Below, one piece after another: positions 36,438 through 60,267 of a stretch of DNA of 63,724 nucleotides. Made by a program: the position numbers and the translations under genes. The first letter of the stretch is position 1. Every line of letters begins with the position of its first letter. Origin of the DNA: Octopus bimaculoides (Eukaryota); the NCBI RefSeq assembly GCF_001194135.2, contig NC_068986.1, forward strand, positions 13,233,647 through 13,297,370, in the 5' to 3' direction. A model generated the notes under the pieces. That model worked only from the letters and a program-made list of their open reading frames with translations. It had not been told where the DNA came from and searched no databases.

Positions 36438-36884
36438 TTATGAATCGCTTTCACTTGCCTCCTCCTGACTGTGGCTACTTCGGCTGTCGCTGTCTTCATA
36501 ACAAATTGTCGGTAGACTGGACGGTGATAATAACAGGGGCACCTTAGAACAATCCTTCATCATGCTACTGCTACAACTAGTACTACAGCTACTACTACTA
36601 ACATGAGCAATACTGCTTCTTGTTGTTGTTGTGATGGTGGTTGTGGTGTTATTAGTGGTTGTGGTGCGGTTGGTGTTGGTATTATTATTAACCTGGAAGC
36701 TCAAGTTGTTGTTGTTATTGTGGTTTTTGTTTTTGTGCGGAATCTGATCTTTCTTGCTTGATTCCTCTTTGTTTTGTCCTTTCCCAGCCATAACACGCTC
36801 CAGCCGGTTCGCTTGGTTTGCCCACTTGGCACTTTCTCGGATTTGGGCAATCAGAAGGTCTTTCTTGATGTCAACGCTTAATAT
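36438..36884 (-). CDS. Clathrin terminal-domain-like gene, probable last coding exon (end of propeller plus low-complexity tail)
   Basis: Acceptor tctttcaaacAG, phase 0. ILSVDIKKDLLIAQIRES resembles CHC [18 protein letters not shown]. The frame stays open through N/T-, S- and D/E-rich sequence to TAA at 36440-36438. Confidence 0.78.
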   Translation of the reverse strand: MLSVDIKKDLLIAQIRESAKWANQANRLERVMAGKGQNKEESSKKDQIPHKNKNHNNNNNLSFQVNNNTNTNRTTTTNNTTTTITTTTRSSIAHVSSSSCSTSCSSSMMKDCSKVPLLLSPSSLPTICYEDSDSRSSHSQEEASESDS

Positions 36885-36942
36885 CTGTTTGAAAGATAAA
36901 GAAAAAAAATTAGTCGAGTAAAACGATAGAGCATTCAAACGA

Positions 36943-36973
<31 letters not shown>

Positions 36974-37700
36974 GACTAGAACTCTGTCAGCTATGATAGT
37001 CGATCCAATAAATGGAATTGCCTGCTCGTGAAATTAAAGTGTAAGTGGCTGAGCGCTCCACAGATACACATACCCATAATGCTGTCCTCAGGGATATTCA
37101 GCATGACGTAGAATATGATAAGGCTAGCCCCTTTGTAATTGCAGGTACAAGTCATTTTTGCCAGCTGACTGGGCTGGAGCAACGTGAAATGAAGTGTCTT
37201 GCTCAAGGACAGAACATGTCTCCAGGAATTGAACTCATGACCCTGAGTCAATTACCCTAACCATTATGCCACATACTTTCACCCACTTACGCACACACAC
37301 ACATATAAAAGGCAAAAGCATTTGGCATCATATTTGCTTTTTCTTAATTTTATTTACAGAAGTATGACATTTACATAAGCATTTTCTGTTGAGTCCCTGG
37401 ACAATTTCCATGGTATATCATAACAAGAGCATTCAGAGAGCGCAAACCTCCGCCAAGGCAACATCAACGTCCTCTCAACAATTAGCCAGAGATGAGATTT
37501 TCAAAATGAGAATATCTGAAAAAAACTTGACTACTCTCACAAAGAAAAGTGGGGCAATAATGGGGTAGTGATTCAAAATAATGGGTTCATTATGTTAAGT
37601 TTTATTTTGTCCTTGGAACTTTCCACCACCCCCAAGGGGGCAATACTGCCCACTTTGGGAACCAATGCTCCAAGGGATAAGACAGCCAATAGTCTTTTAG

Positions 37701-37738
37701 TATGTGAACATAGCATTCAGCCTATTGCGTCCGTGGAA
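37701..37738 (+). CDS. Candidate exon of unidentified plus-strand gene
   Basis: tcttttAG / YVNIAFSLLRPW+AA / GTGAGT; ends in phase 2, joining in frame to 40915. Confidence 0.4.
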
Positions 37739-38344
37739 GTGAGTCTCTCTTTCATGCGTGCATTCTTGATCTGGGTTTTGCCTGACAGACAGTTTTGTTT
37801 TTCCCAATTGTCCTTTTCTTCTTCGATGGAATTCAATGGGTTATATTGTATTAGTCTAGTATTCAATTTAGAGCATTGGGCTCATAACCATGAGGTAATG
37901 AGTTCAATTCCTAAATTGGGCTGCGTGTTGTGTTCTTGAGCAAGACACTTTATTTCACGTTGCTCCAGTTAACTCAGCTGTAGAAATGAGTTGCAACGTC
38001 ACAGGTGCCAAGCTGTATCGGCCCCTTTGCTTCTCCCTTGGATAACAAGGTGCCATGGAGAGAGGAGGCTGGTATGCATGGGCAGTTGATGGTCTTCCAT
38101 AAACAACCTTGCCCGGGCTTGTGCCACGGAGGGGAACTTTCTAAGTGCAATCCTATGGTCATTCACGACCTAAGGTGGTCCTTTCTTTCTACTCAAGGTC
38201 CAAGTTAGAATTACACTTACAACACATCCAGCTACAGAAACCATGCCAAAGTAGACAGTGGAGCAACAATCCAGTTCTTGGGCCTGTTGGACCCTGTCGA
38301 AGAATCCACCCCATTAAACAAAGACGTTAAATGATGATAATGAA

Positions 38345-38795
38345 ATTATTGTATACAGTGCTCAGGTGCACTACAACCTGTCAAAAGTGCGTATAAAGCA
38401 TATGCAGTATTGTACAAATGTCTGGAAAGTGAACAGTGTATAAGTCGGATACATGCTTGTGCGTGTAGGGAGGGGAGAAAATCAGGTGTAGTGTTGGCAA
38501 ATCTCAGGAAGCATGGAAGATTTGAAGGATGCAGTGCTCCGACAACTAACAACTGATGCTGGCAGATTGTTCCATACTTCAGCAACTCTTAGCGTGAAAA
38601 GGTGTTTCCGAAAGTCATGGGAGCTGTGCTGTTTTCTGACTTTGTAAACATGTCCATGAGTGTTAGACAGGTGGAATTTGAAAAGGTGCTCAGAGCTAAT
38701 GTTAGTAAGATTGTTAATAATTTTATAGGCGTCTGCCAGATGTCGGAGTTTCAATGTATCCATACCCAGGGGAGTAAGGCATTCAGAATATGGCA
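38345..38795 (-). mobile_element. CR1-clade LINE 3' fragment
   Basis: LGMDTLKLRHLADAYKII...GHVYKVRKQHSSHDFRKHLFTLRVAEVWNNLPASVV; same family and 3' UTR as 9935-11528. Confidence 0.9.
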
Positions 38796-57560: not shown

Positions 57561-58482
57561 ACCCAGGCTGGTGGCACGTATGAAGCACCCATACTAGTGC
57601 CACAGCAGCCAATTTAAATGAATCTTGTCATTTTCCATCTTAATACTAATGAAGCGACTCGTTAACCTCAGTTTGTTTTCTATTTTATAAAACACTGCTT
57701 TGTTAATAGTTTAATTTCCATTTCATATTAATTAACCATCAATCAAAGTCACCACATTACTTGCAAACAATCCCTAAGTTAACTCAGTGCAGCTCGTTCT
57801 AATGAGAAGTGATGTGGCTGGTTGTCCTCAGGATATAACTGGTACTTATTTCTTTGATATCACAGAGATGAAAAGCAAAGCTGGCTTCCAACAGAACTTG
57901 AACTCAGAACATTCAGTTTCACCAGGATATCATTTCCTACAGTCTAGTGTTGCTACAACTTCACCATCTCTAACCCGACCCAATCAAATTTAATAATCAT
58001 TGATCTAAAACAATTTCAGATTTATTGATTTTTTTTCTCCCTCCTTTTTAAGTTCTTTTTCTCTTCTACTTTAAACGAGAATTTTATAATATACGACACT
58101 TTGATCTCAGCTAAAAAAAACTGAGAAGCGAGCTTTATCATATGAGAAATATAATTTGTTCTTTCTTTGTTGGTCACAATATAATGACATAACAGTTTCA
58201 TCAATGTCTACGAGGAAGAGACTGGTTATCTATGAACAATATATACTATCGATTGCACATACACAGCGAATGTGTTTTGTTTATATGCTAAATTTCCTGT
58301 GGGGTACCATCAAAAGAAAGCTCCCCACATGACGCTGAGTGCCAAATATGCCATCCTGCAGCAAATTTGGAATATAAATGAAACACATACACTAGGTATG
58401 TGCAACCAATCATGTTTACAAGAGCTGCTCTTAATTCGTAATTTAACATATATTACCTTTACTCCTGTATATGTTGCATTGT

Positions 58483-58830
58483 GGAGGCACATGAAGGTGC
58501 ATGGCTCAGTGGTTAGAGTGTCAAGCTTACGATTGTGAGGTTGTGAGTTCCAACCTCGGACCGAGCTGCGTGTTGTGTTCTTCAGCAAGACACTTTATTT
58601 CACATTGCTCCAGTTTACTCAACTGTAGAAATGAGTTGCGACGTCACAGGTGCCAAGCTGTATCGGCCCCTTTGCCTTTCCCTTGGTTAACACTGGTGGC
58701 GTGGAGAGGGGAGGCTGGTATGCATGGGCAACTGCTGGTCTTCCATAAACAACCTTGCCCAGACTTGTGCCTGGGAGGGTAACTTTCTAGGTGCAATCCC
58801 ATGGTCAGTCATGACCAAAGGGGGGTCTCA
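58483..58830 (+). mobile_element. tRNA-derived CORE-like SINE family D (and variants)
   Basis: TGGCTCAGTGGTTAGAG...GAGTTC..TCCCGG head, then TTGAGCAAGACACTTTATTTCAC.TTGCTCCAG..CACTCAGCTG core. Copies/variants at 18560-18672, 36975-37290-, 37860-38185, 42100-42410-, 44935-45170, 51050-51410, 54900-55200-. Confidence 0.85.
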
Positions 58831-59339
58831 GGAGGCACATGGATTAGTGATTAGGATGTTGCACTCATTACCATAAGATTGTGGTTTCAATTCCTGGACC
58901 AAGCAACATGTTGTGCTTTTGAGCAAAATACTTCATTTCTCGTTGTTCCAATCCACTCAGCTGGAAAAACTGAGTAATACTCCAATGGACAGGTGTTCCA
59001 TTCAGGTGGGGAGTATATACACCAAAGAATCTAGGAAACTGGCCTTATGGGCCCATGGTTTGGGAAGGACCTTTGATCCCTTTATTTTGATAAGCTGCAC
59101 TAATTTTTACTTGATCTCAACTGAAAAGACTGCAGGTGCAAGTTGTACATGGGGCAAAGCTAAAACAATAAAGGGAAAAAATTTTGTATCAAGGTTTAAC
59201 ACTAAATTAGGGGTGTGATTTGTAAATGAGAAGATAGGCACAGGTTGTGTGATTAAGAAGTTCACTTTGCAACTATGTGGTTTCAGGTTCAATCCAACTG
59301 CGTGGCACCTTGGGTAAGTGTCCTGTATGTGAAATATTT

Positions 59340-59815
59340 TTTCCCATGAGGATTCCGGATCCCAGTAATGAACTCATTTGCATACAGCCAATCAGAGCTC
59401 ACCCTGACTTTATTGTACACAAACAACTATACAGAGGCAGCCATGTGGATAACGAAGGTTCAGATCCATTCAGCTCTCAGATTATGCCCAGACACAAAGC
59501 CCAACATAACATTTGTGAATGTGTTAAAAACAACCAATCTGTTGGTAAAACACACTCTACCAAGTAAACTCAAGACAAGCAACAGTGTTGTAAGTCGACC
59601 GATCACCAAGTTACGCCTGAATTTAGAAGGAGACAAGTAATTAGATAGATTTGCATCTATAACTGTTATCGGATTTCCCAGATCTCCAAGCCCCTTCTCA
59701 TTCCTGATGTTATAGACCATGCCTCACTTCCGTACATTAACACAAGGTGGACATAACACTTCATATATGGATCTTGGTCTTGATGCTCAGAGCATGGTTT
59801 CTCATGATGTTATAG
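59340..59815 (-). mobile_element. RTE-clade LINE remnant (C-terminal RT region)
   Basis: Minus strand reads LSIKTKI.. CYVHLVLMYGSEAWSITSGMRRGLEIWEI, matching the RTE motif VLLYG.EAW.....R.LEA.EM; stops and frameshifts present. Confidence 0.6.
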
Positions 59816-60114
59816 AATTTTGAGAATGCAGAAGCAATTAAGCAATGCAAATTCAATTAAACAATTAATAATGATTTCAAATTTTTTCCACAAAGCAGCT
59901 TGGGGGGAGGGGATTAAGTTGATTCCATCGACTCCAGTGCATAACTGGTACTTATTTAATCAACTTCAAAAGGATAAAAAACTAAGTTGAGCTTGGCAGA
60001 ATTTGAACTCAGAATGTAGTGGCAGACAAAATACCGCTAAGCATTTTGCCCTGTGTGGTAACGATTCTGCCAGCTCGCCGCCTTAATTAAACAATTAATA
60101 ATAGCAATGCTCAC

Positions 60115-60267
60115 CTTGCCAGAGGTCCCAGTGGTAGACTGTGGAGTCTGTTATGATAGCAATGATGTCAGAGTTCACCCAAGTCCAGAAAATAACTCGT
60201 TCCAACATGTCTGTTTTACTGACCAAAACTTTGTTGCCGACATTAAATACTTCAAAACGAAGATTTG
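60115..60267 (-). CDS. Clathrin heavy chain terminal-domain-like gene, internal exon (blade 2-3 region)
   Basis: Acceptor tttcttcccAG, donor AG/GTGAGC; 153 nt, phase 1->1. Peptide NLRFEVFNVGNKVLVSKTDMLERVIFWTWVNSDIIAIITDSTVYHWDLWQ aligns by eye to CHC [49 protein letters not shown]. Confidence 0.9.

Follow-up and report, generated by a model that had tools for sequence, protein, structure and literature searches.

The clathrin heavy chain (CHC) is among the most conserved and best-studied eukaryotic proteins, and its terminal domain is seen as a module that has meaning only as the tip of a triskelion leg. A second heavy chain, CHC22 (CLTCL1), is of vertebrate age, has a full length of 1640 amino acids (aa), is about 85% identical to CHC17 and forms triskelia. 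The small, uncharacterised protein CLHC1 (clathrin heavy chain linker domain-containing 1, C2orf63) takes its name from a motif similar to the CHC linker. The gene described here lies on the minus strand of a stretch of 63,724 nucleotides (nt) of Octopus bimaculoides (contig NC_068986.1, positions 13,233,647 to 13,297,370), which is called the window; all coordinates are counted from its first letter. It codes for a CHC-type terminal domain without a leg and is a member of an ancient, leg-less, clathrin-derived paralogue family present across Bilateria, from molluscs to lampreys. The gene identity and the family assignment are considered nearly certain. No publication on a clathrin paralogue limited to the terminal domain came up in full-text literature searches, and the family appears to be uncharacterised and present in databases only as automatic predictions.

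The canonical CHC terminal domain (CLTC/CHC17 residues 1-363; PDB 1BPO, 1C9I, 1UTC, 5M5R) consists of a seven-blade propeller and the first linker helices, and the complete Octopus product, with the same two parts, corresponds almost exactly to this crystallography construct (CHC 1-363). The two can be aligned end to end. In phmmer, residues 9-347 of the Octopus protein matched CHC 6-339 with an expectation value (E) of 3e-73, with just three 1-aa insertions or deletions in the part of the alignment printed by HMMER. An AlphaFold2 model was built from a 34-sequence family alignment. Its predicted local distance difference test score (pLDDT) is mostly above 85 over residues 10-340, two helices are predicted at 339-348 and 350-375, and the tail at 377-478 is disordered. 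When the model was compared in Foldseek with clathrin terminal-domain crystal structures, the template modelling (TM) score was 0.90-0.93 and the root-mean-square deviation 2.0 Å, at 34% identity. The arrestin-box groove, E11 and R297 of canonical CHC are also found in the short protein. In contrast to canonical CHC, it is encoded by a separate gene, stops at about CHC residue 355, is about 34% identical, carries the replacements Q89E, R64G, K98L, Q152E, F27W and R188E, and has no legs, hence no trimer, lattice or light chains. Like CHC22, it is a retained and functionally specialised CHC duplicate, but the short family is terminal-domain-only, about 34% identical and apparently older than Bilateria. 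The resemblance of CLHC1 to the short family considered here is one of name; it was not among the 150 best profile matches, and no functional data on it were found in the literature.

The exons in the window were first located by tblastn with human CLTC as the query (identical to the PDB chains over residues 6-341 and 100% matched by bovine CHC over its C-terminal 455 aa). Four matches on the minus strand, at 60268-60110, 53474-53346, 47315-47169 and 39128-38946, are collinear with CHC 84-135, 131-173, 173-221 and 264-324, respectively (34-41% identity, E 9e-12 to 8e-6), and in the rest of the window tblastn gave no CLTC similarity above noise. A fifth exon, coding for CHC 229-263, was recovered by a targeted search at 43091-42969 on the same strand. 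Read again from the DNA, the gene has six exons of 153, 119, 165, 117, 174 and 447 nt in the window, the last including the TAA stop. An AG acceptor and a polypyrimidine tract precede every one of the six, and a GT donor follows all except the terminal exon. A single open frame, entered in phase 1 in the first window exon, runs through all six to the TAA at 36440-36438; it aligns with CHC residues 84 to about 355 and ends in a disordered tail rich in N, T and S. Its translation matches Pfam Clathrin_propel with E of 5e-10. The number, coordinates and sizes of exons, the frame and the stop given in the original prediction were thereby reproduced exactly.

The first coding exon of the window (60115-60267, minus strand, as are all those that follow; 153 nt, phase 1 entry) is the fourth of nine by homology. 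It encodes aa 89-140 of the complete 478-aa protein (CHC 84-134), a segment with blade 2 and the clathrin-box region in which Q89 is replaced by E. The exon at 53346-53464 (119 nt; aa 140-179, CHC 135-173) has E in place of the W-box residue Q152, and in the exon at 47148-47312 (165 nt; aa 180-234, CHC 174-228) the arrestin-box Gln is kept (Q198, equivalent to CHC Q192). The family signature HIIELGPYKHGNFAP is borne by the exon at 42972-43088 (117 nt; aa 235-273, CHC 229-263), and blades 6-7 are encoded at 38949-39122 (174 nt; aa 274-331, CHC 264-322). The terminal exon (36438-36884, 447 nt including TAA) starts with ILSVDIKKDLLIAQIRESAKWANQANRLERVMA, which is homologous to the first CHC linker helices (about 323-355) and contains the family-wide ...A.RLE... 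motif. Its first part, 36753-36884, codes for the last beta-strand and the two helices (aa 332-375), and its remainder, 36441-36752, for a cephalopod-specific disordered N/T/S-rich tail (aa 376-478, pLDDT below 50). The TAA stop at 36438-36440 has a position common to the O. vulgaris/sinensis and Argonauta proteins. Candidate poly(A) signals of the predicted 3' untranslated region (UTR) lie within 36025-36230 on the minus strand, ATTAAA from 36225 and AATAAA from 36030, each running to lower coordinates.

The complete product is known from two other assemblies, O. sinensis GCA_006345805.1 and O. vulgaris GCA_951406725.2, in which a 478-aa protein 98% identical to the window model is predicted; the gene spans about 175-178 kb in these species. 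The first 275 aa of the window model, which span all the junctions, are 100% identical to this protein, and the differences (5 substitutions and 1 indel) all lie in the tail. The orthologue has 88 additional N-terminal residues that form blade 1 and include the equivalent of E11. By tblastn with the 478-aa protein, residues 1-88 are not encoded in 60268-63724. An exon could conceivably hide in a 10-N gap of this segment at 61356-61365, but a gene of about 175 kb in O. sinensis/vulgaris leaves ample sequence upstream of the window for them. The original prediction had the coverage begin at CHC residue 84, and this has to be corrected: the apparent start is an effect of the window edge, and the N-terminal exons are located beyond it, on the upstream side. 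All seven blades of the terminal domain are present in the real product, but only blades 2-7 are encoded in the window.

The gene model is also borne out by transcripts and by other genomes. Contig L001 (2,297 nt), from a sequencing run of another cephalopod, has an unbroken open reading frame (ORF) of 443 aa with 390 nt before it and about 575 nt after it, and it aligns to the window in five blocks, the ends of which are the inferred splice junctions, five junctions being confirmed in this way. Transcript-like contigs of orthologues are present in many sequencing runs. In Argonauta hians the exons are exactly 153, 119, 165, 117 and 174 nt long and lie at equivalent places. A structure of nine coding exons is common to Argonauta, Patella and Tachypleus, in which the N-terminal part is coded by three extra exons, and the boundaries in Patella and Tachypleus are equivalent to those of the last six exons in the window (153/119/165/117/174/terminal). 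An old, intron-bearing genomic duplicate, as had been proposed, is therefore upheld by an exon structure common to a limpet and a horseshoe crab. The vertebrate CLTC exon sizes invoked in the same proposal, presumably 269, 162, 114 and 174, differ from the Octopus values of 272 (153 + 119), 165, 117 and 174 in a way that fits the three one-residue indels of the phmmer alignment. In Patella vulgata (limpet; record L003, 1-9682) the gene is just 13 kb long, versus about 175 kb in Octopus; it adjoins SBDS and a GHMP-kinase gene, and no gene was called in the 10 kb downstream.

Two introns of the Octopus gene, 60114-53465 and 53345-47313 (within 47313-60114, minus strand), hold all five flagged runs of N. 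The runs at 57339-57348 and 54127-54333 belong to the former, and those at 51410-51492, 51207-51216 and 48490-48499 to the latter. These five assembly gaps are purely intronic and hide no coding exon, because the Octopus protein from other assemblies, the blocks of the mRNA contig and the Argonauta exon sizes all give continuous coding.

No CHCR leg, light-chain-binding region or trimerisation domain is present in the product, and it therefore forms no triskelia or lattices. The leg was searched for with a profile hidden Markov model (HMM) of 33 full-length CHCs (1,647 positions), run with filters off on every six-frame piece of the window. This model matched the window only at HMM positions 86-324, with no match to the leg. 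In the 36 kb downstream, neither the CHC HMM nor tblastn with CLTC recognised any leg-like sequence, in agreement with the absence of CHCR exons noted there before. The TAA comes after two linker helices and the disordered tail, leaving out the trimerisation domain and the light-chain-binding proximal leg, and non-cephalopod relatives end a few residues past the ...RLEKAI... helix. Neither CHCR (PF00637) nor a clathrin linker was matched by Pfam in any of the 20 family members checked, and Clathrin_propel is the sole Pfam domain in 18 of them. The Octopus product does not count as a clathrin heavy chain by function, since tests for two defining features, the CHCR leg and the trimerisation domain, showed both to be absent.

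The six exons might also be read as belonging to the canonical CHC gene, either as its 5' part or as a short alternative isoform, with leg exons outside the window or in gaps. The window spans only part of a gene of about 175 kb, the assembly has many gaps, and the database name of the orthologues is 'clathrin heavy chain(-like)', all of which would suit such a fragment. The stop and the terminal exon are, however, common to O. vulgaris/sinensis and Argonauta, and the Patella and Tachypleus proteins end a few residues past the linker helices. In the mRNA contig, about 575 nt of 3' UTR follow the stop and there is no continuation into CHCR exons. The lack of leg-like sequence in the 36 kb downstream, an identity to CHC (about 34%) far under the level among canonical metazoan terminal domains and the absence of any full-length CHC from the short clade likewise speak against a canonical gene, and this explanation is given hardly any credit. 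A terminal-domain-only paralogue, as originally predicted, is what remains: the orthologues and the mRNA contig end at the same stop without a leg.

Selection on the gene was estimated against Argonauta over 275 window codons, covering the propeller and the helices. The nonsynonymous divergence (dN) was 0.032 and the synonymous divergence (dS) 1.40, with a ratio (omega) of 0.023. This value is approximate, since dS is close to saturation in the Argonauta comparison and saturated in that with L001; it shows strong purifying selection on the propeller. In the tail, dN was 0.24, and the tail thus evolves about eight times faster than the propeller. Decay of a partial copy of the CHC 5' end into a non-functional pseudogene would account for a product that is without everything making clathrin a coat protein and that ends in a low-complexity tail. 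This is contradicted by frames and splice sites intact in all six exons, by the omega value together with 275 aa free of any difference from O. vulgaris/sinensis, and by orthologues that are 60-70% identical across molluscs and recognisable across Bilateria, with transcript-like contigs in many runs. A pseudogene is excluded for practical purposes, because omega is 0.023, far from the value near 1 of an unconstrained sequence, and all differences from O. vulgaris/sinensis are confined to the tail; the same conclusion had been drawn in the original prediction. A processed pseudogene or retrocopy of CHC was considered too and is ruled out by five introns with AG/GT borders, the intact frame and the same omega.

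Octopus and Argonauta agree well in the last 40 or so residues of the tail (36441-36560, minus strand; KVPLLLSPSSLPTICYEDSDS...EASESDS) but not in its N/T-rich middle. The conserved end may represent a linear motif or an acidic phospho-cluster. Tails behind the propeller are specific to single lineages. The member from Owenia fusiformis (1,087 aa) has a disordered C-terminal extension of about 690 aa, rich in S, K, R and P.

Relatives of the Octopus protein were found far beyond cephalopods. The word-indexed search returned 41 proteins, all short and all molluscan (cephalopods, gastropods, bivalves and a chiton), with 60-70% identity over the propeller. An exhaustive profile search covered 1.84 billion cluster representatives, of which the best 150 clusters were examined. 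After the molluscs, its top matches were short proteins of 330-430 aa, scoring above full-length CHCs. Cluster look-ups and a second profile search placed further lophotrochozoan members in the annelids Owenia and Ridgeia, the nemerteans Lineus and Tubulanus and the brachiopod Lingula. Ecdysozoan members come from Priapulus, the horseshoe crabs Limulus and Tachypleus, the spiders Stegodyphus and Nephila, mites and the centipede Strigamia. Deuterostomes are represented by the hemichordate Glandiceps, the crinoid Antedon, the lampreys Petromyzon, Lampetra and Lethenteron and the caecilians Microcaecilia and Geotrypetes. Among the 150 best clusters there was no insect, crustacean, tunicate, teleost or amniote member, although very divergent ones could escape. 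The family may have been overlooked because no member was seen in the usual model groups (insects, Caenorhabditis, teleosts and amniotes).

Neighbour-joining on 52 terminal domains (354 columns, 200 bootstraps) placed every short protein in a single clade with bootstrap 100, so that the phylogeny makes the short proteins one bilaterian-wide group. Inside the clade the branching resembles the species tree, with vertebrates, ambulacrarians, ecdysozoans and lophotrochozoans. A tree of 156 sequences gave a short clade of 47 members, each of 325-487 aa save that from Owenia (1,087 aa, with its disordered tail), and this clade contains no full-length CHC. The short family has the signature ELGP[HY]xxGNxA and a 1-aa insertion before GK, where canonical CHC has EVGTPPxGNxPF, and its members share a C-terminal end point just beyond the A.RLE helix. 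The window encodes both the signature, HIIELGPYKHGNFAP, and the end motif, ...NQANRLERVMA. Orthologues in databases, such as Lingula XP_013398554, Limulus XP_013786453, Petromyzon XP_032823741, Microcaecilia XP_030065525 and those of Patella, Aplysia and Crassostrea, share the length class, end point, signature, exon structure and clade with the Octopus protein; the cephalopods alone add a tail of about 100 aa rich in N, T and S.

The simplest reading of these sequences is that one CHC duplication took place before the bilaterian ancestor and was followed by vertical descent and many losses. Two other histories were considered. A mollusc-specific origin is ruled out by the profile search and the cluster look-ups, which found members across Bilateria. 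Independent truncation in vertebrates is ruled out as well, as the lamprey and caecilian proteins have ELGPH..GN and the same end point and belong to the clade with bootstrap 100.

Clathrin-type propellers outside full-length CHC were also seen in proteins of Pristionchus (572-971 aa, with PDZ), Heterodera (689 aa, with MSP) and Glandiceps (686 aa). In this respect they are like the short family, but they keep the canonical signature EVG.PP.GN.P and fall outside the short clade. By this signature and position, the nematode propellers and the 686-aa Glandiceps propeller are independent events, and the clathrin propeller has been duplicated more than once.

The clathrin terminal domain has four peptide-binding sites, with Q89, Q152 (yeast Q155) and Q192 (yeast Q195) as anchoring Gln residues, and its Royle box comprises E11, N296 and R297 (PMC11543927). 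These sites are changed to different degrees in the short protein. In the clathrin box, Q89E, T87R, R64G and K98L are found in Octopus and nearly all molluscs. The W-box has F27W and Q152E, the latter in Octopus and most molluscs. In the arrestin box Q192, W164, L183, I194, H229, I231 and E232 are kept, and R188E and K245N are changed; E11 and R297 remain in the Royle box. In Octopus numbering, Q198, W170, I200 and H236 belong to the blade 4-5 groove. Positions constrained only in the short family concentrate at CHC 166-240, with a cluster at 194-240, in the blade 4-5 groove and the adjoining loop.

The best explanation of all the data combined is that the gene encodes an ancient stand-alone terminal domain which may act as a motif reader, and this is held to be likely. 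The product would be a soluble, non-polymerising monomer that reads short linear motifs in disordered regions of its partners. The blade 4-5 groove, which is the arrestin box of CHC, may form the core of its working surface together with the ELGP[HY]xxGN loop next to it, whereas the clathrin-box groove of blades 1-2 and the central W-box would have been remodelled by the change of Gln to Glu and the loss of basic residues. With groove rims less basic and more acidic, specificity is expected to have shifted, and the ligand set would most likely overlap with that of clathrin but be displaced from it. Such ligands could be recruited or sequestered without coat assembly. This mechanism, with blade 4-5 as the main site, is put forward tentatively from the pattern of residues. 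On a broader scale, ancestral bilaterians may conceivably have had a second, non-polymerising, clathrin-derived propeller that read its own motifs via the blade 4-5 groove, in parallel to the clathrin-adaptor network or regulating it, a scenario that is likewise offered with reserve.

The original prediction had named an adaptor decoy, a scaffold and a new binding module as possible functions, and the first of these is weakened. As a decoy, the free propeller would bind clathrin's own clathrin-box, W-box and arrestin-type motifs and act as a competitive inhibitor or buffer of coat assembly. A fold superimposable on the CHC terminal domain, the retention of the arrestin-box pocket with Q192 and of E11 and R297, and Q89 kept in some non-mollusc members would agree with that. 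On the other hand, Q89, the clathrin-box anchor, is Glu in Octopus and nearly all molluscs, and it is the sole column strongly conserved in canonical CHCs (0.89) yet present in less than 50% of the short family, so a position constrained in clathrin has been released here. The acidic end of the motifs is contacted by R64, K98, R188 and K245, and these have become G, L, E and N, respectively. In the W-box, Q152 is Glu and F27 is Trp, and identity to the CHC terminal domain is just about 34%, despite the high conservation of this domain among canonical CHCs. With the Gln residues of the clathrin box and W-box changed, basic residues lost and the blade 4-5 groove kept with family-specific constraint, a simple decoy loses likelihood and is considered rather unlikely. 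A new binding module would thus be a closer fit than a faithful decoy for clathrin-box adaptors.

A still weaker candidate is a clathrin-independent structural subunit of another complex, assembled via the tail or the linker helices, in which peptide binding by the grooves was lost. All three classical grooves are altered to some degree, the C-terminal helix motif (A.RLE...) is conserved family-wide, and the yeast terminal domain is able to dimerise via an extended terminal helix (PMC11543927). Residues of the blade 4-5 groove, including the anchoring Gln, are nevertheless among the best conserved of the family, as expected of a retained peptide-binding site, and a purely structural role is judged improbable.

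Several observations weigh against an ancient stand-alone motif reader. The argument for the ligand site is drawn from residue conservation. The change of Gln to Glu is conservative and might still permit weak clathrin-box binding, and several non-mollusc members retain Q89. The trees are distance-based (neighbour-joining) on about 350 columns, support for the attachment of the short clade among canonical CHCs is low, and the vertebrate members (lampreys and caecilians) are on long branches. A word-indexed protein search with the C-terminal 455 aa of CLTC listed only matches of 346-783 aa, none of them from a cephalopod, and text searches for a clathrin heavy chain of Octopus or squid gave nothing decisive. 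Clathrin-dependent vesicle recycling was studied at the squid giant synapse, according to the citation of Augustine et al. 2006 in PMC5807904, and from this background a full-length CHC is expected in Octopus.

A stand-alone module kept for more than half a billion years with omega of about 0.02 implies that the free propeller has a function for which current models of coat assembly have no place. The family can serve as a natural experiment that shows which of the four binding sites of the terminal domain are important by themselves. Since species with the gene include lampreys, spiders, oysters, annelids and Lingula, it is open to loss-of-function and interaction studies. Its members are named variously 'clathrin heavy chain 1', '2', '1-like' and 'CLH1-like' in databases, and such inconsistent automatic names may lead to errors in orthology tables and in expression work on molluscs and other non-model animals. 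In a transcriptome study of Amphioctopus, 'CLTC' is listed as a hub gene, and which gene is meant is not distinguishable (PMC10456336).

Apart from this gene, Pfam searches on ten further ORFs of the window gave nothing but a reverse-transcriptase remnant. It lies downstream of the gene (RVT_1, 10396-10818, plus strand, E 5e-12), with a neighbour ORF at 9877-10227 on the same strand, and is probably a decayed long interspersed nuclear element (LINE). Long simple repeats of CA/TG type and ACC type occupy 12000-12670, 24130-24800 and 55109-55640 and produce spurious long ORFs (poly-T/poly-V, 'HTHTH'); several simple repeats adjoin assembly gaps. A short interspersed repeat is present in at least nine copies on both strands, at about 4389 (minus), 14071 (plus), 23720 (minus), 23906 (minus), 29967 (plus), 39729 (minus), 43250 (minus), 47481 (minus) and 61423 (plus), and one of its frames reads ...GTEP(G/R)TMWL.SKLLTTQP.... 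Two copies, those at 47481 and 43250, stop about 160 nt short of the coding exons that start at 47312 and 43088, respectively, on their upstream side.

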